From the NCBI RefSeq assembly GCF_000143415.4, contig NW_003314314.1, forward strand, positions 811,771 through 875,770: 64,000 nt of DNA, given 5' to 3'. The notes under the pieces were generated by a model. The model made no database searches and was not told where the DNA came from. It saw only the letters and a program-made list of their open reading frames with translations. Below, piece after piece: positions 11,252 to 64,000 of the stretch. How positions within the stretch are numbered: the first letter of the stretch is position 1; each line of letters starts with the position of its first letter. This DNA is from Selaginella moellendorffii (taxonomy: Eukaryota > Plantae > Lycopodiophyta). Made by a program: the position numbers and the translations under genes.

Positions 11252-12269
11252 TGCATGTTCGTGGCATTAGACGTTCATAAAAGTTATGTTTGTTGAACTA
11301 CTCCGAGTTCTTGAACCAAACTGGTTGATAAATCATTTGCTCTTTCATAGTACCTCAGAAACGTTTAGAACAATCGCGAGGGAGCCCGAGGTTCCAAGAG
11401 AGGTTTCTGCATCTTTTCATCCACCACCGAGTGAACTCGGCTTCTTGAACGATCCAGAGCGAGACGCGGTTTGGTGTCAAGGGGCGAGGCGATCAGGATT
11501 TAAGAGTTAGGAGGACGGGTTCTAGATGGGTTGATCTCGCACTTCGAGCAGCGAGAATCTCGTCCAAAACGCCATGCCAGATTGGCTATTAGTGAAGTGT
11601 AAAAGTAAACCGGCAAAGATTTTGTTTAACATTGAGTCATGCAATAAAAACAATAACATCAACAGTGGTATTGCTGGAAACGAGATAGAGGGCCACCAGG
11701 GAGCACATGGTACTTTCTCAGTGAGAAGAAGGATGTCCTCCCTCTGAGCCATTGCAGCTTTTGGATCCCAATCGAGCTGGATGGTATTTCTTCCATTGTT
11801 TTTTAGTTCTAGGTTTTCATCCAGGGAGGAAGGCATCCTATTTCGTGGGGAGATGCTAGATGGACCATTTTGCAAGAGTGGTGGCAAAGTAGCTCGAGAT
11901 GCCCTGGTTTTAGTGTGCACGAATGTCTTTCGTTTCTCATACTGGCATTATGTAATTACTTGGGAGCCTCTAAGTAAATTCTCAGATTATTGGTATTGGG
12001 AGGGAAGCACTAACAGGAGTTTCATGCACTCTCACGGAGAAGGAAGATGGAGGAAGGCAAGAAGGCAGAAGAAGAGCTGATGAAGCATTACCTTGTCAAG
12101 GTAAATCTTTTCTTGCATCACAGGGATACTGCTGAATGAAATGGAGAGAGCCTCAAGGCTATATCATGGCTTGCGAATGAAGATGAACCAATTCCACAAA
12201 ACGTGTGAGGCCATGAAACAATGTCCAACTCGAGTGGAATGAATCACTGTTGATAGGGTCATAGATGAA

Positions 12270-12760
12270 AAGTTTGAAAGACATCTTCCTAACAGATTTA
12301 CCATCAAAGCTACCAACTAATTGTGAGGTTGATTATTAAATTGAGATTGTTTCAAGTTCTAAGCCGGTTTTATATTGTTTGAACATCAAGGAGAAGCAAT
12401 TCATAAAAGTTCTTGATAAAGTCATATTTAACTAAGTAAGTCATATTTTAGAGTGTTAGTCCTTTTTGTTATGAAAAAAGATGGTACTATGAATGATTAT
12501 CATGGTCTCTACAAACTTACAATAAAAAACAATTATCAATTGCCTCATATTGATGACATATTTGATGAAATTTTAAAGGTTAAGTATTTTATACAACTTG
12601 ATTTGCAACCAAGTATCATTAGATATGGGTGGCAGATCAAGATCTAAAGAAGACAACCTTTAGGACTTATTATGGATCCTATGAATTCATGATTATATAT
12701 CATTATAGAAAAGATTTATTTGTTGTTCTATATATCAACAATGTTCTAATATTTAGTGAA
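12270..12760 (+). mobile_element. Degenerate Ty3/gypsy reverse transcriptase fragment
   Basis: VLFVMKKDGT, DYHGLYKLTIKNNYQLPHIDDIFD, KTTFRTYYGSYEF, FVVLYINNVLIFS (eroded YxDD). Confidence 0.85.
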
Positions 12761-12990
12761 ATGTGTGTCATTCCTTATTTTGCATTCAAATTGGGTCTAA
12801 ACTTAAGTTCCATGTTAAGTCAGTGGGGTATCTGCTTGTTTGCACTAAATCATTGGTATATTAAAATTGTGTTAAACTTTGTTTGACACTATTTTGTGTA
12901 TTAGAGCTGGATATAAGGAGCTGATGTTTGTAAAGGTGAGACCTTTATTTTGGAGTGCAATAGACTAATTTTAAATTCATATGCATTACA
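12760..12990 (+). mobile_element. Partial LTR ('LTR-A' family, 3' part)
   Basis: Similar to ~53455-53672 (cattggtatat..aaaattgtgttaaac..tgtttgacac) and ends ...aattcatatgcattaca. Confidence 0.6.
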
Positions 12991-13879
12991 TAGCAGCATT
13001 TGATGCCATATTCAAACTCAAGCACTAAGATCAAGCATAAGCCAGGCTCAAGCTCTAGTTGTGATAGATTTATTGATAAGTTGGGGCTTAGGCAAAGGAT
13101 TGCTGGGTGTGTTAGCTAAAAATAATTGCCATTATTATTAATAACAGTAATAACCAATCTAACAATTCTAGTATAGTATATAAATCTTGACAATATATTA
13201 GCCTTACAACTTTTTCTTACTAGTGGACACCTAAGAAATGCTTATAGAGGATTGCAAGCAATAATACAAGGATCTATAACTTTGCTAATTGTCCCCTAGA
13301 GCATGGCACCTCCTTATCTATTTTTGCTTTTTTCTTTTCTAGCTTCTAATGGTCAAGGCTATGGTTATGCAGTATAGCTATAACTAAGATTTCTGATTCT
13401 AAAAAATGTTATGCCTTATAAATCTAAATATAGTTTGTATTAATGATAAGCTTGATTATAAATAAAATTATGCTAAATTTTTATAAGCATTTAATGTAAA
13501 TAGTATTTTAACAGAATTTATCAGTTATATCAGTTTTGAAAAAGCTATAAGAGGAAAAACAAAACTTAAACACATCTATAATTATTATATTTATAAAAAC
13601 TAATCAGTATAATTATTATATTTAATGATATTTACTTTCAAGCAGTGCATTGTATCTTCCGAGATGTTCCACAAGCATCCACTCTCTCAATGAAACTATA
13701 TACTATTCCTTGATGGTGGATGCACTTTCATAACTTTCAAAAGCATCTTTGATGATGGAGAGAAAACACTTATCTAAATTCCACACTAACAACTCCATAA
13801 CTTCCCTTAGTAAAGGATCATCACTATCATCTATTCAAATTTAAACAAACATCACCCTCAACCTCCATCACTTAAACCC

Positions 13880-14700
13880 AAAATATTTAATGTTCCTTCT
13901 TAATTGTTATTGCAGTTAGGAACATAATATCCTAATCCCTCAAAAAATACTTTACAATTGAAAAGATATATTAAGTTGACCTTCTTACCACAATGTGATA
14001 TGACTTTATCTAGCACTATATATCCTTTGAATATACTTATTGAACAAATCTATACCAAACATTATCTAAAAGTTTGGTATCTTTAACACTACCAAGTATA
14101 ATCTTTCTTTCCACTTAGATATATCTTTATTTGTATATCATTTATAAATTTCTTAATTATTTGCCTATCTTTTGAAAATTAAAAGTGTATAAACAATATT
14201 TGCTCAACTTTTAATTCTAACAACTTAATTAAGTCTTTGGATATCATGCTATATGCAATTTTTATATCAATCATCACTTAGACTCAGTATCTAAAGACAA
14301 AGTCTATAAGATACATTAATGGATTAGTGATTGCATAAATCTTGAAGAGAATAATTCACTTTTTCTTCTTTATAGTCTCCATTAACCAATTTATGAACCC
14401 CTTTAACCTCACCAACACTATCTTCCTTTATGACATTAATGTGAAATTTTACCTTATGCTTGTTGAGACATTCTAAAAACCTATTTCTTGCCTTTCCATA
14501 GTGGAAGCAATAACCTACACTATTTATTTTGCTAGGAGTAAATTTTATAAATTGTTGTTACTTGAACCTATTAGAAGGAAGAAGAAAGGGCCTATGACTA
14601 AATGAAGTAGCTAATAGATACTAACCACCACTTTTATTAATCATTCTTTATGACACTTTGGAGCAAAACTTTCCTTCCACACCTTAGTGGTGGAAGGTAG
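13880..14700 (-). mobile_element. Heavily transition-mutated gag/protease remnant of the same gypsy family as 54744-57960
   Basis: Reverse complement aligns by eye with ~55800-56267 + 57387-57780 and lacks the solo-LTR insertion. Confidence 0.7.
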
Positions 14701-15849
14701 GGATTAAACCTTGACCTAGTGGTGGTATTGGCAAATATTACCATGATCAAAGGATTTGGTGGGAATTAACAAAAGGATATTAGGGGATGGTGTTCCTTAT
14801 ATCTTAAGGCAATTTAAAGATGGTAAAGAGTGATTAATAACCATTTATAAATAAATGATATAATCTTAGAGAAATAAAATTATAGTATGAGTGGTTTTTG
14901 ACTCTTAATAAGACAATAAGAATGAATATGGTTCTAATGCAAGAGGCTTTAGGTGTTGGAAGTGGGATTCAAATACATAAAGTATTTGGACCCAATATGA
15001 AGTCTTGAAGCCTTTAGGGTGTTAATAAGTACCCCAAGTTAGGATGAAGACCTATAGAAATTGTAAATGAAATTCCTTTAAGTTGTTGAAAGTGTAATTA
15101 AAAGATTAAAGTAGAATGAAAAATTTTGTTGTTTACATACTATACATGTGAAATCAAACTTTATAGTGTAATTGGTGATAACCATAAACTTGCTCATATA
15201 CAATTGTAAAATAATCATCATATTTTGATATAAAAATATTATACAAAGATAAAGCTATAAGTTTAGGCTAATATATAGAGAATATAGGAAAGAAAAGGTA
15301 ATAGGAAGGAAATTTTTTTCTATGTTCTGTTTAAGTAGTTGCAGAGGGTATTACAAATTATTAGTTTATTGCATCACTATAGTAGTCAAAAGAATGAAAG
15401 AATGCCAGAAATAACAAAAAATATAATTCTAGATATTATCAATAACATTTATTTCTCTAATAGAAAATTTTAAGCTTATTTTGAAAAGAATGTTTTAAGC
15501 TGGATTGTAAATATCTATAGTAGTATTTATAGATTTTTACCATAAAAATTCTAAATTATATAAAAATAAAACTAATCTTTTCAGGGAGTAAAAATCTTTT
15601 ATATTTAATTTAGATATAGTCTTAAACCATAGAATTCAGAATATCCATTGGAGGCAATGGCTCTCTCTGTGTACATAGATAAAAATATGAGTGCTTAAAT
15701 TCTTGAAGAGTATGATAACATATAGAGAAAACTAAAATGAAAAAAAATAAAGTGATTATAATTTATTTTATTTTATATAATGATAAAAAGAATGTGTACA
15801 CAAACTTGTTACTATTTTGTTTTTTCTTAAGCACTCGGGTGGTAGTGAA

Positions 15850-16090
15850 TATATCTAAAATATGCTTGGATATTCTAGGATATTCTATCATTTAAAGGTT
15901 ATTATTTAATCTTGTATTAATAATTTATAAACTTTCCTAAACACTTCCTAGTATATTTTAATTTTACCATCTAATGGTTCATATGCAATATTAATCTTGT
16001 GTTTATAAATTATAAACATCCATTTGATCAAATTAATTAATAAATAGAAATAATGCTACTATTAAGTAAACCAAGTGTTGATGCATGCAA
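15850..16090 (+). mobile_element. AT-rich non-autonomous Helitron-like repeat, copy 1
   Basis: Shares tatgcttggatattctaggatatt...ttaatcttgtgtttataaattataaac...ccaagtgttg with copies at 16.8, 31.1 and 47.8-48.1 kb. Confidence 0.6.
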
Positions 16091-16095
16091 TAAAA

Positions 16096-17548
16096 GAATG
16101 GGAGGGTGGAAATGAAATTTTCTTGATGATTGCATTCAAACCCTCAACCTTGGATATGTCTCCCTCTTTGGTATGTCCAATAGTAGATCCTATCAAGAAT
16201 CAAGTAAGTTCCATAGAGAAAACCATCATAGTTACAAGTTAACGTAAAGCACCACGAGCAGAGGTTTTCAAGGTTGACTGCATTGTTTCCAATGTGAGAC
16301 TGATCTCCATGAAATAAAGAACCTTACCGGTCATCCAAAACCTTCATGTTATCCCCACAGCAACCAAGTCAGGATAAATAGGTTGTGATCAAGAACGCCA
16401 CTCCCTCGTCAAGGATTTCATCAATCATCGTTATGAAATTCGAGGTCTCCTTTGCAATGGCAAGATCACCTGAGGCCTTGGACAGTGTGGTCTCACTCTC
16501 AGCCTTGGAAGCTCTGAAGAGCTCACGACTCCCACAGCTCGTCCGGATGATCTGCATGTTCATACTCACCCTCTTGGCCGTGAAGAGCTCAGTTGTGCAA
16601 AGCTTCCTCACCTTCTTCCAGTAGGCGAGAAAGACATGCTCCTGTAATTCATGACAATAGAGACCACATAGGCAAATTCCATGCTTGAGAAACTCCTTAG
16701 CGATGGCTAAAGTGGAGACCATGAATAGAGCGATGGATCCCACACTACTACATCAGAGTGGGGGGTGGACAATCCCACCCCTGCTGTTGTCTAGCGCCTT
16801 TAGGTTTTTGGTTTGGTTATTATTCAATTAGATTAATCTTGTATTTATAATTTATAAATATGTTTATAATTTATAAACTTTATTAAACCCTTTTTAGTAT
16901 ATTCTTTTTTATTTTATCATCATGGTTGATATGAAATAAGATTAATTTTGTGTTTATAAATTTTCTTATAATTATAAACCATTTGATATAAGTAAGAATA
17001 ACACAGCAAACCAAGTGTTGCCACATGCAACACATAACAATTTTTTAAGTTATTGCTTTTAAGTTGGTTTATACAATTTAATTTTCTGTCATTAAGCTTG
17101 TTATTATTTTTCATTGATAAGTGTTATTAGTAGTCATTATTTGTGACTATCAACTTAAAAAATATTAAACTTTAACTTTAAATCTCATTTATAATAGTTA
17201 TAAGCCAAAAAAATTATCATTATTATGTTTAGTTGACTAAATGTCTGTGATCGTCTCCTGCTTCTCATCTGGCTGGAACTTCACTTAGTAGTGCCAAGCA
17301 TAAGTGACGGAGGGGTCCAAATTTCTACGAGAGCTACTGATGTGTGATGTGTGGGATGGGAGCAACAATGGATGGGCAAAAGATGATATGTTTGATATAT
17401 CACATTGAATATACAACCAAAGGTTAAGGGTTGTGACGCCTACTTGTTGGAAGGTGGCAAGACATGTCATCTGGATCTCATGATGAGAAGAGCATATCAC
17501 CTTGACATCGGATGCCCAGGAGATGGAAGTTGGCCGTTGCTTGCTTGA
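16096..17548 (-). pseudogene. Deleted, interrupted duplicate of the CYP71-clan gene at 6670-8207
   Basis: 16096-16742 matches ~7098-8014 including the intron, with many small deletions (YWKKVRKLCTTELFTAKRVSMN); 17515-17548 matches ~8080-8165; interrupted by a repeat insertion. Confidence 0.85.
16743..17040 (+). mobile_element. Helitron-like repeat, copy 2, inserted in the P450 pseudogene
   Basis: Same AT-rich core; subterminal hairpin GTGTTGC-cacat-GCAACAC at ~17015-17033. Confidence 0.55.
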
Positions 17549-17719
17549 ATGTCTAAACCTTCTTTCAATTTTACATGTACAGGCATTGACCCCAAGGACA
17601 ACGAGAACTAGTATCTACCAGCACCTAAATGACATTTTATAGCCGAACGGTGTCTAAAGAAATATTCGAAGCTATGAGATGTTGTCTAAGGAAAAAAGAA
17701 TCACAAATATGTATATACA

Positions 17720-19989
17720 TTACCAATTGCGGTCATGAGGTTCTGGATAATCCAAACCAAGCTTCTCAAAAATCTCCCGCTCTGTCTCACAAGGAATGGA
17801 TTCCGTACTTGCTTTAGACTGCAAAGACATAAGGTTAGAGCAAGATAAAAGAGAAAGAACAACCATACATCTTTCTTCTTGCTTTCGCGTATGAAGAGTC
17901 CTTGATCGCTCAGCTTGTATCCAAACTTTACCCGAGCCAAAAATCGAATCCTGCTCGACAGTGTTTCAGTTAACAAAGCATGGAAATGGTATCAAACGAT
18001 GGAACTTACTTTCTGTTGAGAACATCGTTCCCAGTAAAGGCGAGTAGTGCAAAAGCGTACACATGCCTTGGATAAACCTGAACGAGCACGACATAGCATC
18101 GGAGAAACAAAGCGAAAGCTTACTTTTATGTCTATTCTTCGATAAGCTTTGCATTGAAAGTGAAAAATCCCCATAAACATATCGGGTTGAGTACCTCCCT
18201 GTTCGAATCACATGAAGCACACTAAAGAAAAGAAAAAGCTGAGTTTACCTTTCGAGCATTTGCATCGACGCGAAGACCATCTACGATAAACTCGATTCTG
18301 CGCAGTTCTTGGACGAGTCTCGCCAGAAGATCCTGATGGCTGCATAGCAAATGTGAGTGAGAGGAGTGTGTAAAACATGGCAAACTCGTAAACCTGGAAC
18401 CATCGGGATGAGTGATTAGAATATCAACGTCGCCACAAGTAGGCTTGCCTCTTCGATAAGAACCTGCTGCATTTACCCAAGCCTACAAGAATGACGCACT
18501 GGTAAGCAAGAGGAGAAATGTGTAAAAGCTTACCCCTGGAGCAAGAGTTTCAACAACACCTCGCACGAACTTCTCGGTGTCCACCACTTCGTCTCGAGGG
18601 ATTCGCAAATTAATATCGTCATAATACTTGACGCCCATGCGCTGCATAGAAGTCAGGGACGAGTAATTCTCCAGGTCTTTGACAGTGCGAAATCCTTTCT
18701 TATACAGCTCTCGTGCCTGAATTGCTCCGATACCCCACACTGAGCCAAGAACTTGTATTTCGCCAACCTGAACATCATCATCATCCAGCTTCACCACAAG
18801 TAAGAAATGTCGGAAGAAAAACCTGCGCTTTCAGATTGTCAAGCTTTTGAAGTTGTCCAGTTCCCAGAATCTCCTTCACCATTTTTACAAGGGATTTTCC
18901 CACCCCATACATTTCTCTAATCTGCTCGACACTCGTCACTTTGTATGGCAAACTTCGCAGCTTATTCACAGTCTACAAAGCCAAGATTTAGTACAACTAG
19001 AAAAGCAAGAGTATCCATTACCTTTCTGTATATCAGGGATCTCCACTGGTCTCCCAAAACGTCCTCGTAGAGGTGCCACATCTCAGCCAGCGGATTCGTC
19101 AAATGCTCGTTGAGATTTGGATTCTCTTGCTTGCCGTAGAAGGTCTGCTTCCGCCTTAACTTCTCCTTGAAGTTCATGTTTTCATCCTCGTCCGAGCTCG
19201 CATCCTCCTCTTCGACAGGCTCCTCTTGATCGTCCGCAGCAACGGAAGTTCCAGCGGTTATAGTTGCGTTTTCTTCTGTCCTGACGAGAAAGCTTGTGCC
19301 ATCTTGTGTCCTGTCCAGAAACGAAGAGCTTTCTCTCGAAGTTGATGTGATCTCCGAGATGGTCTTATGCTCCTCTCCAGGATTTGTGACATCCGGAGTT
19401 TGGAGCTGGCAAGTCCTCGCTAGATCTTGCTGTTCTAAAGCGGCCGTAGCAACAATGGTTGTCTCAGGCTCGCGTAGAACAACAGACGATTGATAGCTTT
19501 CGGTGGAGACGAGAATTCCTTCTGTCAAACATGTTTGAAGCCAATCATATGGAAGAAACAACTGAAAAATAAGAAAACAAAGGAGAGTCTTGAGAATGAA
19601 TGAAGAAAGAAGAACAAAGTGTTCTTACCTTGGCGAGATTTTCAGCGTCTGGAAGCCCATCCAGAGCTTTCCTATCGACAGCCAGGACATAATTCAAGTC
19701 TCGTGACACTCGCTTCTTGTTTGGATCGGCAATCGTCCCCCCCAGGCTCTCAAATCTCTTCTTCCAAATCTACCAGCACCCCGCGGGGTTTATCTCAGCG
19801 CACAGCGATCCTACATACCTGCAGCCTCGTGCCATTCACTCCGCGCTCCACAAACAGGGCACAAATTCCCCAGAAAATCCCTTCCTTCTTCTCTTCCCCC
19901 TTGGGCCGGCGCTTGGAATTCCCATTCGCATCGCATTCTTTGATAGAATTCGCGCGCTTCCTTGTCGGATTTCTCCTCTCCTCGCTCAT
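17720..19989 (-). CDS. POLL: DNA polymerase lambda (X family), multi-exon
   Basis: N-terminal BRCT-like exons; HhH GVGKS and [15 protein letters not shown]; [22 protein letters not shown]; FTGNDVLNR; C-terminus [20 protein letters not shown]. Confidence 0.92.
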
Positions 19990-24307: not shown

Positions 24308-24955
24308 ATGGCGGCTCCGGCAACCAGTGGAAGTTCCAGCCTCCTCATCGCTCCTCCTAAAGCGGAAGATCGCCAAGAACACGTAGACGAAGATGTCAAG
24401 GAGTTTGACGACTTGATCTCTAGATCTCTCGCTAGCGCGCTCCGCGGATCGGCCGACCTCGCCAACATGCTTCCAACAGGCACGCTGCTTCTCTTCCAGA
24501 CCTTGGATCCGATCCTCCGGCGAGCTGGGAGCTGCCAGGACAAGACTTTGAGTGCCGCCTTCCTCATCGTTTGCAGCGTTGTGTGCTTCGTCCTCTCATT
24601 CACGGATAGCTTCGAGGCGCCCAATGGGAAAGTCTACTATGGATTCGCGACCTTCCGCGGGATGTGGACTCCGCAGATCGAGCAGCCGTGCCCTGGCGTG
24701 GATCTCTCCAAGTTTAGGATCACTGCTGGTGATTTCGTCCATGCCTTTCTCACGGTTTATGTGTTCCTCACGACCAGTGCCTTCTCCACCGATGTTGCGA
24801 GTTGCTTCTTCAAGGTTCCGGACGAGGTTGTGAGAGCCGCGCCTTCCATCACGGCCTTCCTCGTGAGTAGTGTGTTCTTGTTATTCCCAACAACGAGACA
24901 TGGAATTGGATTTCCTGTGAAGCCTCCAAAGACTACCGCATCCTCCAAAGCATGA
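24308..24955 (+). CDS. DMP (DUF679) membrane protein, copy 1
   Basis: LANMLPTGTLLLFQ, SFTDSF, GKVYYGFATFRG, DFVHAF, FPTTRHGIGFP; TATAAA at ~24249. Confidence 0.92.
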   Translation: MAAPATSGSSSLLIAPPKAEDRQEHVDEDVKEFDDLISRSLASALRGSADLANMLPTGTLLLFQTLDPILRRAGSCQDKTLSAAFLIVCSVVCFVLSFTDSFEAPNGKVYYGFATFRGMWTPQIEQPCPGVDLSKFRITAGDFVHAFLTVYVFLTTSAFSTDVASCFFKVPDEVVRAAPSITAFLVSSVFLLFPTTRHGIGFPVKPPKTTASSKA

Positions 24956-52107: not shown

Positions 52108-52754
52108 GGCTGGATTGCTACAAGGGGTTTGCAAGCATCAAAACTCTGGTCGATGTTGGTGGCGGCAATGGAGCATTGCTGTGTGACATTCGAACTCGCT
52201 ATCCGCATATCAAAGGCATAAATTTCGATCAGCCCCATGTTGTTTCTCAGGGAATTGCATCTGAAGGTATCCTCTCACAGATTTTTCATGCTCGATCATT
52301 CAAGCACTCTTTGTTTACTTCTTCCAGGAGTGGAGCATGCTGGTGGCGACATGTTTGGATCAATTCCCCAAGGAGATTCAATCATGTTGAAGGTAAAGGA
52401 TCCAGAGTCAAATTCTCCTTGCCAATCTGGTGTTTCATTCCTTTCTAGTGGATTCTCCACAATTGGAACGACGAACAGTGCCTGAAGATTCTGCAAAACT
52501 GCTACAAATCCCTTCCTGCTCAGGGAGGGAAAGTCATTGTCGTGGAAGTTTTACTACCTTCTGAAGCTTATCAAGCTGCCAGTGAGTTTGAGCTGCGAAT
52601 TGGACTGCTCCTAGATCTTGTCATGATGGTTAATTTCAACGGCAAGGAGCGGACCTTTGAAGAGTACCAGGCGCTCGCCGAACAAGCTGGTTTCAACAAA
52701 GTGCATCTTGTCAACGTCTCCAATGGACTAGCAATTCTGGAGTTTCACAAGTAG
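52108..52754 (+). pseudogene. Plant O-methyltransferase (COMT-like) 3' half with introns, fused to the CCR fragment
   Basis: LDCYKGFASIKTLVDVGGGNG, GINFDQPHVV, GVEHAGGDMF, WILHNWNDEQCLKIL, NGKERT. Confidence 0.88.
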
Positions 52755-53194
52755 CAAAACAGGTCACTTTTGGCTGTCACCGTAACACAATGAAATTGTT
52801 TTTATTCATTTATATATGCCCACCATGAAACATGAAATCAAAAGATTTAGAAATGCCATTTTGAAGAAAATTGCCAGTGTAGTCCATGTCTTCCCAAATC
52901 CATATAGAAGACAAGAGAACTGTACAGTCGTGATTATCACGTTCAAGCACCATTAAATTTAAGCTGTGTTTAAGCTCAAATTTATTCTAGTGGGAGAATA
53001 TACTTTAGGATGGTTTTGCTCTGCTCAACAATTTATGTGCCAGTCAGTATTGGAAAGCAGCATTCATTCATATTCTGTTTACATGGCCTCATGGCACCCC
53101 CCAAGAAGATGTGACCAAGGGATTTAAATAAGCTGCATAAATGATTGTCTCCATAGTCCTAGAGTCACCCACTTAGTCTCTTGTGCTTTCAGAG

Positions 53195-54140
53195 TGTAGT
53201 GTGTGTGTAGTGGTCACAAGTGTATACATCATGTCTATTAGAAGGGCTTGGGCTTCTATTTTTAATAAAATTCACACAATTGCATTGCCCATTTTGTATT
53301 GCCAAGGATGACATGAAGGTTAGAGCCCTTCTTGGATTTGGTTTTGTCAATCTTAAACTCATTCTAAGACTCATTATTAGACTTAGTTTCATCTTATTCA
53401 AACTCTTTATTGTTTTGATTGTGATTTCAAAATCCTAAGCCTTGTAAGCCTTAAGTCTAAACGCAAGTTCTATGTTGCTCTAGTCGGTGAGGTACCTTCC
53501 TCCTCACCTTAAGCCATTGGTATATCAAAATTGTGTTAAACACTGTTTGACACCATTTTTCATACAAGTGTTAGATACAGGAAATTGGTGTTCGTAGGAT
53601 TAAGAGTGTATGGGACCCTTATTTCATAATACAATAGGCTTGGAATTTGGTTTCAAATTCAAGTGTGCTACATTTGGTATCAGAGGAATTGTCATAGCAA
53701 TTCCTATTCAGCTTATGTCGGATTTTTTGACTCAAGTTGCATATGCAAAGACTTTTCTAGTAGATTCGAAGCGACATGTGTAGGATTCATTGGATTGCAC
53801 CATTCGGTAAACATGTTATATGCATGTTCAGTTATTAAAAAAGGCATACATGTAACTGGCAAGATGGTGAAAAGGAACCGTATTGATGACATTGAAACCT
53901 TTAGACGAAAGAATCAAGAGGAAGAAGCTCTTGTTAGAGATGCTATGGAAGAGGTTAAGGGTGAGTCAGAAGAAGAAGAGCCTTATGCTGTAGCACTACA
54001 ACATATAACTTAAGACATTGAGATTGAAAATTTGTGAAAAGAAGTTCATAAATTGAAGAAGGAGAACAAAAAGAAGAAGAACGAAGCTGAGGCAGTTAAA
54101 CCAGCTAAACTTAACATCCCTTGGTATAACAAGACTTGAT
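53195..54140 (+). mobile_element. Gypsy 5' end: LTR-A (to 53672), tRNA-iMet PBS (53675-53685) and leader/gag start
   Basis: ...gtgtgctaca-tt-TGGTATCAGAG; downstream DNA is duplicated at 54744-55175; left boundary approximate. Confidence 0.75.
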
Positions 54141-54214
54141 CATAGGACCCTTTAAATCCCAAGCCTTGGGTGCAACACTTGCTTCGGGATGTTGTGGCAA
54201 AACACTGTCCTTAG

Positions 54215-54691
54215 ATTGCGAATTTGGATACGGGATGAACACCATTGTGTTCAAGCCGATCTCTACATTCTGTAGATATGCCAAATGAGCAAATCTAGAT
54301 ATTTTCCATAAATAGCATTTGGGACCGAAATGAAACTAACACAAAGGGCATGATAGTGAGGGTGTTTGGTAGACACAGTAAGCTATTATTCAGCGATAAT
54401 GAGGGACTAGTCTCAATATGCAAGGGTTCTTGTCACTAGCCAGTGCAAGATATAACGAGACGGGAACTCCTTACCGGGCTAAGTATGCTTAGCTAATAAC
54501 ACATAGGAATCCCGTCCTTATACTTGTCTAGTCTAAGTACACTCGAAATGCCCAGTTAACTCCATTAGCACAAGAGGGGTTACCAAAGGGATCCAACTGT
54601 ACCACCTCCTGCTATTATGGTAGTAAGGAAAGAGTGTCCATAAGGACTAGCCGACAAGTATCTTTTGATACCCGAAGTCACATTCATGACA
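54215..54691 (-). mobile_element. 5' portion of LTR-B
   Basis: Matches ~56913-57381 and ~60913-61382 up to the terminus. Confidence 0.8.
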
Positions 54692-54695
54692 CTAA

Positions 54696-57600
54696 TGTAG
54701 CGCAACAGACTTGGAGTTCGGCTCCAAATTCATGTGCGCTACATTTGGTATCAGAGGAATTGTTTCAGCGATTCCTATCCAACTTTTGTCAGATTTTCTG
54801 ACTTAAGTTGCATACGCAGAGACTTTTCTAGTAGATCTGAAGTGACTTGTGTAGGATTAATTGGATTGCACCATTCAGTAAGAACATTGTAAGTATGTTC
54901 AGTTATTGATAGAGATATGCATGCAGTTAGCGGGATGGTGAAAAGGAACCATACTGATGACACTGAAACCTCTAGAGGGGTGAATCGAGAGGAGGAAACT
55001 CCTACTAGAGATGCTACAAAAGAGGCTGAGGCCGAGTCAAAAGAGGAAGAGCTAGATGCTGCGGTGTTGCAGCGTATGGCTTAGGAAGTCAAGATCGAGA
55101 ATTTGCGAAGGGAGATTCACAAATTGAAAAAGGAGAATAAGAAGAGGAAGAAAGAAGCTGAAGTAGCTAAACTAGCAAAGCCTAAGCAATAAAACTCCTC
55201 TTCAAGTTCTGAGGACGATGAAGTTCTACAACCGCCCCCAGTTACACAAGTTTCAAAGTTCAAGCCTCCAAAACCACCCAATTTTAGAGGCATGTGGGAC
55301 TATCAGGTTTTGGAAGACTGGGTCTACGATATGGAAAACTATTTCATAGCGGCAGACGTAGATGATCATAAGAAAGTTGTGTGCGCGCAATCCTTTCTCA
55401 CCGATCATGCCAAAACTTAGTGGCGCCAAGTGTGTGTTGAAAAAGGGCAGACTAGAAGTTGGACCAAGATGCATTCTCATATCTGTAAGGAATACTTGCC
55501 AGATGATCTTGGTCTAAGACATCGCGTGGAGCTGCGGCGGTTAAAGCAGTGAAGGGATCTCATGCATTACGTTAATGTGCTTGCTTAAAAGAGCATTATG
55601 ATTGCAAATATGAGTGATGAAGATGCTTAGAGTTATTTTCTGGAGGGTTTAAGTTCACTTTTTTGCAATAAGATTTTGAAATTTAAGCTGAAGACATACC
55701 TGGAGTGTAAGGAGGCAGCACAGCAAGTTGCCTTTATTCACTCGCTCATGGAACAATATCAACAACCATATGCTGGTAACTCGGATAAAAATAAAAATTC
55801 TAGGAATAAACAAGGTGACTGGAAACAGAGGGTGGAAGGCAGGTTCTGCCCTGGAGGCTCACAAGCAACAGTTAACAAAAGTGGTGGTGGTTGGAGACCA
55901 CCAACAGCTTCTTTTGGTCCTAGGCTCTCTGTTCCTCCTCTTGGTGGGTACAAGTAGCAACAACTTGCAAAATTTGCTCCTAGCAATATAGGTAGTGTGG
56001 GTCATTGCTTCCATTGTGGAGAGTTAGGACATAGGTCTTCGGAATATCCCAATAAGCATAAGACAAGGTCCTGTGTTAATGTCATGAGGGAAGGCGGTGG
56101 TGGTGAAGCTGAAAGGGTTGATAAGTTGGTCAATGTAGACTATAAGGAAGAAGAGGTGAGTACTTTCGTTGCTTTCTTCAAGTTTTTCTCACAGTCAATG
56201 CAAACACTAATCCATTGATGTATCTGGTAGGCTTTGTCCGTGGACACCGAATCCGAGTGATCATTGATGTAGTGCACGTGGTTTTGACCCTTTATCCTAT
56301 AGTGATTTACTATAGGATAACACCACGAAGCGGAACCTAAACCCTCTTTATGCCATGTGATAGATGCCACGTGTCCATGCCACATGTCTATAGGAACCCG
56401 AGGTTCAAGGCCTTGGGCCATTGAATGAAGGAACGGTGCCAAACTCCCAAGTGTGGAGCCAAGGAGCAATAGAACCGAACCATGGAGCAACTCCTGAGCA
56501 TAAAGCCCAAGGAGCAAAGGGACAGGAGCTTGGAACGACTTGGAACAGTCCTAGAGTAACTAGCATCCCAATGCTAGGACCAGCATGCAAAATGGAGCCA
56601 AATAGAGTCTAGTGCTATTTCGGCATATCGGTGGCCTAACGCGAGAACATGGGTACTTCACTAGCTAGCATGGAATGGAACTTAGGTTTAGAGCCAAGCC
56701 GGACGCAGAACAAGGATAGGCACGCAAGCAGGAGTTAAACTATGCCTCAGGTTGGTCAGCCATGCCCGACCTACCCACTATCCCTACTATACATTTGGAA
56801 CCCCCCCACAGCCCCCCCCTTGAGGAACACACGCTTTGGGCTTTCACCCCAAGCCTCCCTTAGTACCAAGAGTTAGTCTCTGGGACAAGCTCGAAACTTA
56901 CTAAATATGGAATGTCCCTAGATTGCGAATTTGGACACGGGACGAACACCATTGTGTTCAGAACGATCTCTACATTCCGTAGATATGCCAAATGAGCAAA
57001 TCTGGACACTTTCCATAAATAGCATTTGAGACCGAAATGAAACTAACACAAAGGGCATAATAGCGAGGGTGTTTGGCAAACACGGTAAGCTATCATCCAG
57101 CGATATTGAGGGACCAATCTCAATACATGAGGGTTCCAGTGCAAGACAGAGCAAAAAAGAACTAAGAGCCAGGCCGAGTATGCTTAGCTAGAAACACATA
57201 GGAGTTCCTACCTTATGTCCATCTGGCTAAGTACATAGGACAGTAAACTAACACTTGAACAAGAGGGGCTGATAAAGGGAACCAGCAATACCGACCTCCT
57301 GCCATCGTGGCAGTAAGGTAAGAGTGTCTGTAAGGATTAACCGACAGATAACTTTCGATACCCAAAGTCACATTCGCGACAATTGACACAGGAGCTATGC
57401 ACAGTGTGATATCCGAAAACTTAGTTAAGTTGTTAGGATTGAATGTTGAGCAAATGTTGCCTATGCACTTCTAGTTTGCAGAAGGTGGGCAAGTAGCCAG
57501 AAAGTTTGTGAGTGATGTTCCAATAAAAATATCCAAGTGGAAAGAAAGAGTGGATTTGGTAGTGTTGATGATACCAAATTTTCAAATGGTGTTTGATATA

Positions 57601-57960
57601 GACTTCTTTAACAAATATATAAAAGGGATTTATAGTGTTGGACAAAGTTGTATCACATTTAAGTCAGAAGGACATCCTGATGTATCTTTTTAATTGCAAA
57701 AGCACTCCTTAAAGGATTGGGATGCAAAGTTCCTGACTGCGAGAGCCGCTCAAAAAGCAGCTAAGAAGGGATGTTGGACCAACGCAAAGCTTCACTTCTT
57801 AGTTTGGGATGAACTTATATTCTATAAACAAGAAAGATTGTATCTTCCCTCTAAGGATTTGTAGCAATTGTTTTTGCAGGAACATCATGATGTTCCAGAA
57901 GCAGGACATGGTGGAAAGCGGAAAACTCTAGCTTCATTGATAAAAGGATGTTTTTCAAAT
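54696..57960 (+). mobile_element. Degenerate Ty3/gypsy element: 48-bp LTR end, PBS, gag with CCHC knuckle, protease (interrupted), integrase zinc-finger start
   Basis: PBS TGGTATCAGAG at 54746; CFHCGELGHRSSEY; IRVIID|TGAMHSVIS; QEHHDVPEAGHGGKRKT. Confidence 0.85.
56268..57381 (-). mobile_element. Solo LTR-B (1114 bp) with perfect 5-bp TSD ATTGA
   Basis: TG...CA termini; ATTGA at 56263-56267 and 57382-57386. Confidence 0.92.
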
Positions 57961-60150
57961 GCCAATGGAATGTACTCTAGTCTACATTGATTGTAGTAGT
58001 AAGATTGCCTACTTTATAACACCTTTTTTTTTCATCTATGCAATCATATCCTTGTGTGTAGGCATCTTTACTACATTTAGAGGTTCCTTAATTGGACACT
58101 CAATCTCCTCCATCTCATAATAGTAGTAATTTTGTGAATATTAGTGATAAAGAAGTCAAATTCAGTAAACTCTTTAAGCTCATTCAAGAGTTTGTTGGAT
58201 AGCTTCATGAATAAAATATAATTTATCATTCTAGATAATGCACCAACCACTTTATTATCACCTCCATGCTTGTATTAAATCTTAACAAACATCTTTTGTA
58301 GGAACTCACAGCATACAACTCCTTATCTTAAATAGGTTAATTCTACTATGTAGCATTAAACTTGTGGCTTATGTATGTGAGAAGATGCCCAACTTGAAAC
58401 AATACAACCCCAATAGCAATGTCACTCACATCTCACCACAAAAGGCTTTTTAGGATAAAAAATCTTTAATAGACACAAATGCTGAAATACCATTTGACAC
58501 TCTTCATCCCAATTATGAATAGTAATATGTTTTGATGTGTTCTGAAGAACATTGGTCAAGAGAACTAACTACCTTATGTGTGCATTTCATCAACTCTAAA
58601 GTATTAATCAATGGAGTATCACTATTTTTTGTCCATCTCTATCACAGTGCCATCAACATCAATACTTAGAATATTGTGCTCCCAATCAATCCCTAGCTTT
58701 CTATTATAAAACCATTCCTTCCTAAAAATAACATTTGGATTCATTATTTGGAATGACAGATGGTTGAGATTCCTTTGAATAGTCAAAAGAACACTTAGAG
58801 CCCATTTATAGTAAACATAAGTGCTTTATTTGCCATAACTACTTTATAGATTACTAAGTTCTTTTCTACAAGTTTCTTCACTATGTTAGTACTTAAAAAG
58901 TTGTGTATAAGTTGTGTACAAGTTGGATTGAAAAGAATACTAAATGCACCAGCTTAAATATCCCCTTAAGGGGCTTTCACAAATTGATTGTACATAGAAC
59001 TATTGAGCTCTAGAGAGTTGATACAAACTCAAGACTTTGGTTCTTGAACTTTTGCCATAGAACCACAACAAATGCATAAGCCATTTCCACAATAGATTAC
59101 ACAACATTTATGTTATGATCCAGTGCAAAACAACAAAAATCTAATCTCCCTAAATTACATTACACCTCTTCTTGAAGTTCTTCACCACCTAATCACCCCC
59201 AAGTTAGCTTCATTAAGGGTAAATTATGTATTTTACCCTAACATGCCTTGATATACCCTTAAGCTTCCCTTTGACCAATGTTGACTATGTGGTCAAAGTT
59301 AGCACCTAACAATTATCTTTGATCCCTTCACAAGAGGACAATATTCATTTTGATGTCCAACCTTGTGGCAACTAAAACAATCATTTTTTACCTCTCTTTT
59401 TCTTATTAATCTAAACAAAACTTTTTAGCCTCATTGCCATCTTTATTATTCGATTGTTTCTTCCTTGAATATGAAGTATTGGTTGGCTAGTCATGATTTT
59501 GACTACCATAGACCATCCTATTGACTAAAGTTGACCAAGTTGACTAATGTCACTAGGCTTAAATCTTTTCAATCCGCTAAATTTAAATATTTAAGGAAAC
59601 ATAAGTGTTTGTGAGACTAATGCAAAGATCACAAAGATAAAGTCCAAAGATAAAGTCCCCTACCTAATCTTTAGCAATTAGTTCATGAGATCAACTTTTT
59701 CAAACTTTTTGACAACTAAAGTGAGAAAAACCTTTTCCAAGAAGTCAACTTTATATTAGCTTTAATGTGGTTCTTCTACCATGAAGAAGTATGATCTATA
59801 AGCTTTATCATAAAAAAATCAATCTTTATTTTGTCTTCAGAAAGGTTATGAGATTAATAGGGTTCTTATGATTCCAATTAATAATCAATCTCCTGGCTGT
59901 CACAAACATTTAGTGATGACTTCCATTCCACAATACTATAATCCTTAGCATGATTGATGTAACAATGATAATCACAAACACAAGATTGATTCAAATTAAG
60001 GGTCAATGCAAAATATGAAATCCTTAATAATATTAATGGAATTCTTAATGTCACTCTCAACCTAGTGATTTAGCATTCTTGTTACATGATAATATCATTA
60101 AAAGTTTCCTCCTACTACTTTAATACTAATGAAACTAACAAGGAGTGAAT
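57960..60150 (-). mobile_element. Second, older gypsy remnant (gag knuckle, RNase H) in opposite orientation
   Basis: CFSCHKVGHQNEYC at ~59340-59380; DVSDIAIGVVLFQVGH...DKELYAV at ~58305-58432; eroded PBS near 60118-60129. Confidence 0.7.
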
Positions 60151-60267
60151 TGTAGCGCACCTTATCTCTCTCCCCTTAAGCCAACTGGAAAAGGTGATAA
60201 GAGAGCCCTTAGTGGCTATTTTATCCCCATTTATCCCCCAAGGTTCCAAGGATTCTTTAATACCAAA

Positions 60268-61382
60268 TGTAGTGCACATGGTTTTTACCCTTTATCCTAT
60301 AGTGATTTACTATAGAATAACACCACAAAGCGGAACATAAACCCTCTTTATGCTATGTGACATATGCCACGTGTCCACAGAACAGTGGTGTGGAACCCAT
60401 GGTTTAGGGCCTTGGGCCACTGAACGAAGGAACAGTGCCAAACTCGTAAGCATGGCGCCAAGGAGCAACGGAACCGGATCACGGAGCAACTCCCAAGCAT
60501 ACAGTCCAAGGAGCAAAGGGACAGGAGCCTGGAGTGACTTGGAACAATCCTAGAGTAACTAGCATCCTAATACCAGGACTAACACGCAAAACGGAGCCAA
60601 ATGGAGTCTGGCACTATTTCGGCATACTGGTGGCCTAATGCAAAGATATGGGTACTCCACCAGCTAGCATGGAATGGAACTTGGGCTTAGACCCAAGTTG
60701 GACACAGAACAAGGACAGGCACGCAAGTGGGAGCTAGATTGTGCCTCAGGTTGGTCGGCCATACCCGACCTACCCACTATCCCTACTATACATTTGAAAC
60801 CCCCCATAGCCTTCCCCCTTGAGGAACACACGCTTTGGGCTTTCACCCCAAGCCTACCCTTAGTACCAAGAGTTAGTCTCTAGGACAAGCTCGAAACTTA
60901 CTAAATATGGAATGTCTCTAGATTACAAATTTGGACATGGAACGAACACCATTGTGTTCAGGACAATCTTTACATTTCGTAGATATGCCAAATGAGCAAA
61001 TCTAGACACTTTCCATAAATAGCATTTAAGACCGAAATGAGACTAACACTAAGGGCATGATAGCAAGGGTGTTTGGCAGACACAATAAGCTATCATTTAG
61101 CAATATTGAGGGATCAATTTCAATATGCAAGGGTTCTTGTCACTAGCCAGTGCAAGATATAACGAGACGGGAACTCCTTACCGGGCTAAGTATGTTTAGC
61201 TAATAACATGTAGGAATTCCGTCCTTATATTCATCCAGTTTAAGTACACTCAAAATGCTCAGTTAACTCCACTAGCACAAAAGGGATTGATAAAGGGTCT
61301 AGCAATACTGACCTCTTGCCATCGTGGCAGTAATGTAAAAGTGTCCGTAAGGACTGGTCAACAGATAACTACATTTGTGACA
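60268..61382 (-). mobile_element. Full LTR-B followed by eroded PBS (60255-60265)
   Basis: Colinear with 56268-57381; minus strand ...gtgcactaca-tt-tggtattaaag. Confidence 0.85.
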
Positions 61383-61386
61383 CTAC

Positions 61387-62193
61387 TGTAGTGCACCTTA
61401 TCTCTCTCCTCTTAAGCTAACTAGAAAAGGGGCAATTGCTTAATGAAAGAGCCTTTAGTGGTTATTTTATCCCCATTTATCCCCCAAGGTTCCAAGGATC
61501 CACGGTGATAGTATATCCAAATCTCATCCCATGATCACAATGATAATATATCCAAATCTCATCCCATGATCACATGCACTACACTCACCCCCTTTCAGAA
61601 ATGTTAATGTCCTCATTGACTATTGACTAACAACCCCTACTGAGCCAAGGGGAATCAACACCTCCATTTCCACACTCAATCTACCAATCTTTCCATTTAT
61701 CCCCCAAGGTTCCAAGGATCCACGGTAACATCAGAGATGTTAATGTCCTCATTGACTATTGACTAACAACCCTTACTGAGCCAATTTACCAATCCTTCCA
61801 TTGTGTAGACCAGCTATTCCACCAAACTAGTCATCCACCCGTACTGTAGTCTCACGGTGGATACCTTCGTCCGTGGATACTCCACACAAGAGGAAGGACG
61901 CACGCATGGATGCCCAATACATACGATTTCAAATTTAGGGGTAGGAATATACTTTGCTCAAGGGTATATTATATTTTAAGTAGCCACTAATCAATGGGAA
62001 TCAAACCCATGCCATTTGCTTCGATACCAACTGTAGCACACTTTATCTCTTTCCCCTTAAGCCAACTAAAAAAAGGGCAATTACTTGATGAGAGAGCCCT
62101 TAGTAGTTATTTTATCTCTATTTATCCCCCAAGGTTCCAAGGATCCACGGTGACAATATATCCAAATTTCATCTCATGATCACATGCGCTACA
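61387..62193 (-). mobile_element. TRIM (terminal-repeat retrotransposon in miniature): LTRs 62052-62193 and 61387-61583, PBS, PPT, non-coding interior
   Basis: Short LTRs with TGTAG.GCA...TG..CTACA termini; minus-strand PBS gt-TGGTATCGAAG at 62039-62051; PPT GAAAGGGGGTGAG at 61584-61596; a third partial LTR at 60151-60255. Confidence 0.85.
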
Positions 62194-62339
62194 TGAACTG
62201 TGGCTGTGGTTAGTTCAAAAATTCATTTAACATTCCATATAAACAATATTTACACTTTAGTAATATTGTGGATCAATCCATCATCTAAATCCCAGAGATT
62301 AATGTTGGGAAGGTTAATCTAACTAATGTTTTTACTCAA

Positions 62340-62480
62340 AGATTAATGAAAATATGCTATAAGACAACTCAAGAGTTATTAGTTCAATGGAATGATCATT
62401 CCATGAATGAAGCTATATGGGAAATTAAAGATGACATGAAAAGAGTGTGTCTAAGTTTTGGTTATAACTTAGATGACATT
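62340..62480 (+). mobile_element. Chromodomain of chromovirus-type gypsy integrase (degenerate)
   Basis: QELLVQWNDHSMNEAIWE (cf. YLVKW...EATWE). Confidence 0.7.
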
Positions 62481-62756
62481 TATAAAGAAAGGGCCATATT
62501 GCTATATGATTTGTCTTTTATTTCTATGACCATATTATCATGAGAGAAAGTTATATTGCTTTTTTTTCTTTCATAGCTATTTTTCATGACTTTGATATTG
62601 CCATTTGCACATTTTAATTCCATGGCTGTATTATATTAAACTCTTTTCATGTGAGGTTTATTTAACTTCTCAAGGCTGCCATTCATAGCTAATTCATAAT
62701 GAGCCACAAGAATATGCTAAGAATATTCCAGAATTTAGGGCTGGGAGATGTTGGCT

Positions 62757-63165
62757 TTGAGATCTCTATGAGCTATATATGGAGTATATACTTAAGACTA
62801 CATAAAAGGTATGTTTCACCGTTCTATCTATTTTATTGTATCTTAGGCACATAAAACATAACTCAGAAGTTTCAGATCTTGATATCCCTCAGGGGCTTCA
62901 ACTAAGGGTGTGTATAACTGTACTGAAGATTGGTGTTACAAGGCTTCCAAAACCATCAGTTCAAGGGGATCACATTTTTCCATCAAAGTTTCCTCCCAAC
63001 CAAAGTCAAAGTGGGACTTCAGCAAAACCTTTTCTTTTTTGCTTCTTCTTCTACAGTGATGCCAAGAAAGAATTCGTGGAACATCTGGCTCATCTAGAGA
63101 AAGGCACTCAATCCAGGCAAGAAAAATCCCAAAACTCTAAGAGTGAAGCTACATACATGTTTTGA
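62757..63165 (+). pseudogene. Degenerate duplicate of the DnaJ 3' exons/introns
   Basis: Matches ~45013-45450; similarity continues to ~63305 versus ~45572. Confidence 0.88.
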
Positions 63166-63355
63166 TTATAAAATCAAGTTTGTTTTTACAACCAAGTATT
63201 TGACGTGTAAGCGCGTGTCCCTCCCCCGTGTGACGACAACCCCACGGTGGAGATTGAATCGCGCACGGGAGTTCTCCATCCTAGCCGTCGAAAGCGCTGT
63301 GTAAAAGCACTCTTATTTCCTCTCTGGCGTTCTAGGGTCTTTATCTCGTCTAGTG

Positions 63356-63763
63356 ATGGCTCTGGAGTGGGGAGCTCTGGCTCTCGTCGTCGCCGCCGAA
63401 GGAATCTTGCTACTCTTCGCGACATTCCCAGGATCTCACAAATTTGTCAAGGGAATCGTCGCCGTCCTGCGCAGCGCGCTCCAGCCGCTACTTTCGATCG
63501 TCCCCTTCGCGCTCTTCTTGCTCCTGGATCTGTACTGGAAGTATGAGAATCACCCGCGTTGCGAGGGGCCGTCGTGCACTATCGTGGAGCGCGAGCACCA
63601 CGCCAAATCCCAGATGAAGAGCCAGCGAAATCTCCTCCTCGTCATCGCCGCGCTCTTCCTCTATTGGGTCCTCTACCGCGTCACCGCCATGCTCGTCCGC
63701 ATCGATCACCTCCAGCGCAAGACGAAGATCCAGAAGGATGGAGACGACGAGGACTCGGATTGA
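63356..63763 (+). CDS. BAP29/BAP31-like ER membrane protein, single exon
   Basis: MALEWGALALVVAAEGILLL, LQPLLSIVPFALFLLLDLYWKYE, KSQRNLLL; three TM helices. Confidence 0.85.
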   Translation: MALEWGALALVVAAEGILLLFATFPGSHKFVKGIVAVLRSALQPLLSIVPFALFLLLDLYWKYENHPRCEGPSCTIVEREHHAKSQMKSQRNLLLVIAALFLYWVLYRVTAMLVRIDHLQRKTKIQKDGDDEDSD

Positions 63764-64000
63764 AAGAGCAATGCTTCCTCTTTTTTTGTGTTTAAAGTGT
63801 AATCCATGAAATTTCTTCCAAGAACCCTAAAGCTCCAAGTAGTAGCGCCAAGCCATGGCGGTAGGGTTTTAGCGCTCGTAGATAGGTGCGATCGAAGCGC
63901 CGGGCAAGCACCGGGGCTGGGTGGAGTATCGCCATGGCTGGAATGTGAGAGATTCCAGCTCTTTTTTCGTGTCGCAATGGTGATAGAGTACGTCTACGAG

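Follow-up and report, generated by a model that had tools for sequence, protein, structure and literature searches.

How can the complete long terminal repeat (LTR) of one retrotransposon family come to lie a few bases beyond the LTR of another, inside what looks like a single inserted unit? The question is raised by a 2-kb insertion in the lycophyte Selaginella moellendorffii, located on contig NW_003314314.1 of RefSeq assembly GCF_000143415.4. Positions 811,771 to 875,770 of the forward strand of this contig, 64,000 nucleotides in all, are here referred to as "the window" and are numbered from 1. The insertion combines a terminal-repeat retrotransposon in miniature (TRIM), a foreign LTR that we call LTR-B, a primer-binding site (PBS) of the B family, and part of a further TRIM LTR. 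Here, we find that this composite is a haplotype-specific insertion, and we ask what the four bases between the two families reveal about the molecules that were joined.

One target-site duplication around two families

The anatomy of the composite (Table 1) was established by reading the minus strand of positions 59900-62500 and by repeat finding, BLAST, and alignment. An earlier sequence-only reading had given the order as TRIM, foreign LTR-B, PBS, and partial TRIM LTR, and this proved exact to the base. The layout that it assigned to 60146-62198 also holds, with the trivial correction that the limits between the duplications are 60151-62193, a length of 2043 bp. The inner element is a TRIM: it has short LTRs, a PBS, a polypurine tract (PPT), a short noncoding interior (448 bp, without open reading frames of note), and a 5-bp duplication. 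Its LTRs run from TG to CA with terminal inverted repeats, TGTAG(C/T)GCA...GTG(C/T)(A/G)CTACA, and the outer ends of the whole insert are exact TRIM LTR termini. Both termini of the LTR-B in the composite are intact, and a 17-bp internal deletion lies near its start. At the other end of the B segment, the third TRIM LTR meets the B-family PBS at a common (ancestral) GGAT.

Table 1. Parts of the composite insertion and the second junction, in window coordinates and minus-strand order
Feature	Positions	Strand	Description
Target-site duplication copy adjoining LTR1	62194-62198	minus	GTTCA on minus strand, TGAAC on plus strand
TRIM 5' LTR (LTR1)	62032-62193	minus	162 bp, TGTAGCGCA...GTGTGCTACA
GT spacer	62031-62030	minus	between LTR1 and TRIM PBS
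TRIM PBS	62029-62018	minus	TGGTATCGAAGC, initiator-Met tRNA type
TRIM interior including PPT	62017-61584	minus	body down to 61597, then PPT
TRIM PPT	61596-61584	minus	GAAAGGGGGTGAG, directly before LTR2
TRIM LTR2, complete	61583-61387	minus	197 bp, 35-bp internal tandem duplication; end ...GGTGCACTACA
GTAG junction, 4 nt	61386-61383	minus	LTR2 end to LTR-B start
LTR-B, complete	61382-60268	minus	1115 bp, TGTCAC...CACTACA, end ...CATGTGCACTACA
TT spacer	60267-60266	minus	between LTR-B and B-family PBS
B-family PBS, 12 nt	60265-60254	minus	TGGTATTAAAGA, equal to TGGTATCAGAGG after C>T/G>A decay
LTR3, 3' part of TRIM LTR	60253-60151	minus	103 bp, 10-bp deletion, exact LTR terminus ...GCGCTACA
Target-site duplication copy adjoining LTR3	60150-60146	minus	ATTCA on minus strand, TGAAT on plus strand
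Second junction, TT AG	54692-54695	minus	...TGCGCTACA TT AG TGTCATG..., outside the composite

A Bap31-like gene near the composite (63356-63760) led to the allelic locus, L002, in the public S. moellendorffii assembly. There the flanks are contiguous (...CCCACA ATTCA CTCCTTG...), ATTCA is present once, and the 2043-bp insert is absent. Because L002 joins the flanks around one ATTCA, the duplication GTTCA/ATTCA is real rather than a chance match, and the composite is an insertion specific to the window haplotype. The same comparison overturned a different view of the site, in which the flanks, fragments of a retrotransposon on opposite strands, would never have been contiguous and the duplication would be fortuitous. 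The 5-bp duplication encloses LTR1 through LTR3; none surrounds LTR1 to LTR2 alone. In the minus-strand reading of the unit, neither inner part has a target-site duplication of its own: GTTCA faces GTAGT across the TRIM, and AGTAG faces TTTGG across LTR-B. These mismatches rule out a plain nested insertion with its own duplications. The sequence-only reading had staked its case on an empty site with a single TGAAT or TGAAC in the other haplotype and on the absence of separate duplications left by sequential nesting, and both were found, with TGAAT as the single copy in L002.

The flanking DNA belongs to a Ty3/gypsy element that we call P. A degenerate RNase H fragment (58080-58274, minus strand) matched P0002, a 1039-amino-acid Ty3/gypsy polyprotein of S. 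moellendorffii whose locus, L001 (GCA_000143415.2), carries several LTR-B copies. On the left (59997-58167, minus strand), P0002 is colinear with the flank, which holds a short LTR tail, PBS, and gag of the P element; directly next to the unit on this side come the final ~21 nt of the P element's short LTR, and after them its PBS. The right flank encodes a P-type integrase C terminus on the plus strand. Both haplotypes have this junction between two P fragments, which is therefore older than the insert that lies within it.

Between L002 and the window, coding sequence is 98.8% identical and transposable element (TE) flanks are ~91% identical, with transitions making up ~85% of the differences. 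Compared over 52109-64000, coding DNA differs by 1.2% versus ~9% for TE DNA. The divergence and the transition bias together suggest strong decay of TEs of the deamination type.

What the GTAG junction records

Each half of the four-base junction has a counterpart elsewhere. GT is the dinucleotide between LTR1 and the PBS of this same TRIM. AG is the pair of bases that ends the B-family PPT: the two LTR-B copies at L001 that keep their interior read ...GGGGGGAGAG/TG and ...AAAAGGGTGAGAG/TG (both GAGAG/TG, the slash marking the LTR start), with more than 40 bp of common interior upstream. The sequence-only reading had proposed that LTR-B PPTs end in AG, and two of two copies bear this out. At five LTR-B starts that adjoin host flanks, the preceding bases are AT (three times) and TG (twice), never AG. 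GTAG best fits two untrimmed complementary DNA (cDNA) ends, the spacer between the unique 5' region (U5) and PBS of the TRIM contributing GT and the pre-LTR bases of B contributing AG. Whether the ends met in a concatemer, during repair of a chromosomal break, or in an older master copy, all weighed below, it is probable that the junction joins two such ends.

That AG arose from the TG of the TRIM itself, by a change of GTTG to GTAG, is unlikely because this needs a transversion, which is rare in this mutation regime: in an alignment of the three TRIM LTRs, all 40 differences are transitions. The 14-nt motif CTACA-NN-AG-TGTCA occurs twice in the window, in none of 100 shuffles, and nowhere in 102 kb of other loci. 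We also considered placing the start of LTR-B 5 nt earlier, at TGTAG as in the LTR of a related type (H), with GTAG then part of the LTR, and rejected it on the ground that two B copies with perfect target-site duplications begin with TG.

The B segment starts and ends where plus-strand strong-stop DNA would. It begins at the end of the PPT, 2 nt before the TG of the LTR, and terminates within the PBS. In plants, strong-stop DNA would be expected to halt 12 nt in, where position 64 is modified. Modification of position 64 in the plant initiator tRNA is documented (PMC11301382). The likeness ends at the far side, where the PBS contributes 11 unambiguous bases and those that follow mismatch a copy of the initiator-methionine tRNA (tRNA-iMet). 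The limits of the segment suit the strong-stop-like intermediate of the sequence-only reading; the bases after the first 11 of the PBS do not fit true strong-stop DNA.

The LTR-B family and its relatives

LTR-B is a real LTR family of the Ty3/gypsy type with limits TGT...CTACA. Its termini are fixed because two copies have perfect duplications: a solo LTR-B in the window (56268-57381, TCAAT) and a full B element at L001 (2213-18446, ACTAT on both sides). The window also holds a 5' fragment (54206-54691) and an inner piece (1-273), and more copies occur at two other loci, L003 and L004. The composite's LTR-B is 83-87% identical to other copies. Its load of private mutations relative to them, 4.0%, is uninformative on timing. 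The passage from 5' LTR to PBS reads CTACA TT TGGTATCAGAGG in B copies of L001, L003, and L004; three B copies besides the composite read CTACA TT TGGTATCAGAGGAT(A/G)AGTC. LTR-end-like motifs upstream of two L001 copies were dismissed, one such motif being part of an integrase coding sequence (...FHSTI). A protein search with the open reading frame crossing the LTR-B start gave no match, Pfam found almost nothing in the degenerate open reading frames, and a tblastx comparison with the neighboring gag matched the zinc knuckle alone.

The TRIM, B, and H families have in common the U5 terminus GTGC(A/G)CTACA and a tRNA-iMet PBS, and handling of all three by one protein set is therefore plausible. 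The LTRs of the B and H families are mosaics built from modules that the two have in common. At L003 (14877-15579), a ~700-bp LTR has a B-like start (TATCGTGAATGTGAC...) and is H-like over its last ~220 bp.

A second junction 6.7 kb away

The other occurrence of the motif, CTACA-TT-AG-TGTCA at 54687-54700 (...GCGCTACA TT AG TGTCATG...), lies 6.7 kb from the composite and adjoins another LTR-B. It sits between a 48-bp LTR remnant (54696-54743) and the 5' 486 bp of that LTR-B (54691-54206), and its TT is the B- and H-family spacer. In minus-strand order, 54206-54757 reads reverse-complement PBS, AA, the 48-bp remnant, TT, AG, and the 5' part of LTR-B; in the plus-strand direction, TT TGGTATCAGAGG and a gag come after the remnant. 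Given this plus-strand order of remnant, PBS, and gag, the second junction may be a head-to-head join of two unique 3' region (U3) ends.

The second junction falls within a 3.7-kb stretch (54209-57947) that replaces 2.4 kb of unrelated sequence in L002 (4279-6640). This stretch contains the LTR-B fragment, a 5'-deleted H-type element (gag, protease, and integrase N terminus), and the solo LTR-B; its borders carry no duplication and its outer ends are truncated. To judge by this arrangement, it resembles fragments of cDNA taken up where a chromosome had broken.

Comparison with known joined structures

Two-LTR circle junctions arise by host end joining of untrimmed linear cDNA ends and have been seen in plant extrachromosomal circular DNA (PMC9324142). 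Like them, the composite has an LTR end and an LTR start exactly 4 nt apart (CA-NN-NN-TG), the left pair corresponding to the U5-PBS spacer (GT, from the TRIM) and the right pair to the bases before U3 (AG, from B). Unlike them, its LTRs come from two families, and the junction is chromosomal, within a unit that bears a 5-bp duplication, rather than circular.

In yeast, Ty1 cDNA and replication intermediates are captured at double-strand breaks, with the 3' LTR as a hotspot and extra nucleotides in 40 of 56 inserts (PMC11372161). The composite resembles these inserts in that LTR fragments with bases found only in cDNA would have been fixed in the genome by end joining. The yeast events were experimental, at induced breaks, and without duplications, whereas the composite is an allele found naturally in a lycophyte, has outer ends that are exact LTR termini, bears a 5-bp duplication, and combines two families. 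Measured against break capture, the cDNA-type dinucleotides fit; the exact outer termini and the duplication would be reproduced by break repair only through copying of LTR2 and its flank.

Complex insertions with three LTRs, which are attributed to template switches that went astray and which integrated as a single unit, have also been described (Sabot and Schulman 2007, PMC1950507). These share with the composite more than two LTRs of one family, a flanking 5-bp duplication, and an inferred single integration. They have two complete interiors, canonical PPT-LTR-PBS joints, and a single family, whereas the composite has one TRIM core, with a foreign LTR and PBS as its second "interior," a joint that runs from LTR end to LTR start across 4 nt, and a partial third, outer LTR. 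Two complete cores, a mark of template-switch complexes, are absent, and the outer LTRs, which are similar in such complexes, here include the partial LTR3. The composite thus differs from circle junctions, break capture, and template-switch complexes alike: its parts are heterologous, its position is chromosomal and flanked by a duplication, and a foreign LTR and PBS replace the second interior.

Origin of the composite

The explanation that we favor, tentatively and at somewhat less than even confidence, is that the composite was a chimeric concatemer of reverse transcripts that integrase inserted as one unit. In a particle, or in the nucleus with integration still to come, a full linear TRIM cDNA with an untrimmed right end (...CTACA-GT) would have been joined blunt to the untrimmed left end of a B molecule (AG-TGTC...). 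The B partner would have been a plus-strand strong-stop-like molecule consisting of the LTR, TT, and ~11 PBS bases, and GGAT microhomology would have linked its 3' end with the 3' part of a further TRIM LTR. Host end joining, or end-to-end template jumping by reverse transcriptase, could have made the joins. The resulting concatemer would have ended in a TRIM U3 start and a TRIM U5 end, both of which integrase would have trimmed and inserted, leaving the 5-bp duplication. We infer that the joined molecules were cDNAs and that joining preceded integration. The sequence-only reading had reached the same view of end-joined cDNAs from two families; the junction bases and the anatomy support it in part, and the order that it proposes, joining first and integration second, is conjectural.

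Several observations weigh against this explanation. It needs two joins and an integrase complex whose two ends were supplied by separate molecules, and it concerns a single locus. The insertion point lies within ~1 nt of the older P/P junction (60146-60150 / 62194-62204; L002 8937-8944), a coincidence that it leaves unexplained. Just 11 PBS bases come unambiguously from B, and the ancestral GGAT that follows fits the B leader or the TRIM LTR and not a tRNA copy (GCC...). The GT of the junction coincides with the start of GTTCA, the target duplication. Divergence among the TRIM LTRs (8.7% for LTR2-LTR3; 10.7% and 13.6% for the other pairs) is of the same order as the ~9% haplotype divergence of the flanking TE DNA, so LTR dating cannot separate a preformed mosaic from changes in place. 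BLAST identities had made LTR3 appear older; proper alignment gives the 8.7-13.6% range for all pairs, without discrimination.

Because GT is ambiguous, a later chromosomal break 2 nt past LTR2 would yield an identical sequence. On that account, which we regard as rather unlikely, a normal TRIM (LTR1-interior-LTR2, with duplication GTTCA) was broken at this point and repaired with B cDNA. Ligation would have linked the left end ...CTACA-GT with the untrimmed end of a B cDNA fragment (AG-TGTC...PBS). From GGAT in the sister chromatid's TRIM LTR, the 3' end of this fragment would have primed synthesis, copied the 3' part of the LTR and its flank, and reannealed, so that ~110 bp were duplicated, including the apparent second duplication copy. 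GGAT becomes the microhomology of the right join, LTR2 and LTR3 are the closest LTR pair (a difference that is not significant), and the yeast inserts provide a precedent for capture at breaks of intermediates with cDNA-only bases (PMC11372161). The break must nevertheless fall exactly 2 nt from the LTR end, and no intermediate allele is known. The second junction also has 2 nt between an LTR terminus and AG-LTR-B, which would be a repeated coincidence under break repair, yet is predicted by cDNA ends. The recurrence of CTACA-NN-AG-TGTCA there also tells against a history of ordinary events in place, in which unequal crossing-over made a tandem TRIM with three LTRs, B integrated a few bases past LTR2, and a microhomology deletion, beginning just after the B PBS and reaching halfway into LTR3, followed, with the junction bases owed to chance. 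The duplication with an LTR fragment already present in the TRIM interior, the frequency of nested insertions and microhomology deletions at these loci, and the GGAT at the right join would all suit such a history. Integrase removes AG, however, so that the AG seen must be either target sequence hit by chance, at odds of 1 in 16, or the product of a T>A transversion in GTTG, and transversions account for none of the 40 LTR differences. In addition, B must land exactly 4 nt past the LTR end, the deletion must begin 0-3 nt from the PBS end, and neither a second TRIM interior nor a duplication belonging to B has left a trace. We consider this history quite improbable.

We give very little credence to one further account, in which the insertion is a copy of an older composite master at another locus. 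Nonautonomous, bounded by TRIM LTRs and unusual in its interior (LTR2-GTAG-LTR-B-PBS...), the master would have retrotransposed canonically, and a small later deletion would have taken the 5' half of the 3' LTR. The true 5-bp duplication, the TRIM termini, and the empty allele all accord with retrotransposition, and a right join at microhomology is typical of deletions. This account expects LTR1 and LTR3 to be the closest pair with LTR2 as the outlier; the observed closeness of LTR2 and LTR3 argues weakly against it. A plus-strand primer site upstream of LTR3 is not seen, and no second copy of the composite appears in the window; the four fetched loci (102 kb) likewise hold no further copy of the composite, the TRIM, or the junction.

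Implications

If the composite did form as a chimeric reverse transcript, it would be a natural, haplotype-polymorphic insertion that preserves retrotransposon replication intermediates with untrimmed ends. It would provide sequence-level evidence, outside yeast and retroviruses, that the linear cDNA of plant Ty3/gypsy-type elements carries two extra bases at each end. The cDNA of a nonautonomous TRIM and that of a larger element would be seen to meet and join before or at integration, a concrete route by which composite nonautonomous retroelements arise. A genome-wide excess of LTR end/LTR start pairs spaced exactly 4 nt would be predicted.

A broader proposal, possible and in our view doubtful, is that RNAs of the TRIM and of larger Ty3/gypsy elements are copackaged and that interfamily cDNA concatemers regularly form at untrimmed termini, to be fixed by integrase or by end joining; the second junction would be a further product. 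If so, the locus would be a natural fossil of the exact linear cDNA ends formed in vivo and of a strong-stop intermediate. Should later break repair instead be the correct account, it would still be a natural plant case of cDNA capture at a chromosomal break.

Other features of the locus and its relatives

The TRIM interior carries a rearrangement of its own. At 61595-61784, its 3' part is duplicated with a spacing of 136 bp, enclosing a 39-bp TRIM LTR fragment (61730-61692). Short microhomologies at both joins give the duplication the look of template switching in the course of reverse transcription.

The exact Bap31-like protein of the window is recorded only at L002, on a different scaffold that differs from the window; the copy of the window haplotype is either unannotated or outside that collection.

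At L001, the P0002 element (9676-18040) has ~125-bp LTRs and a T+TGGTATTGGAG PBS and is nested in the 3' LTR of the B element, where the LTR-B coordinates overlap by 5 bp. Farther along (24623-24840), a P LTR follows a P 3' untranslated region and PPT and precedes a PBS and gag, a tandem-like arrangement. In the window, two degenerate Ty3/gypsy remnants face each other: an H-type protease with the integrase zinc-finger region on the plus strand (57355-57987) and, on the minus strand (58080-60130), a P-type gag-protease-RNase H from which the reverse transcriptase has been deleted.

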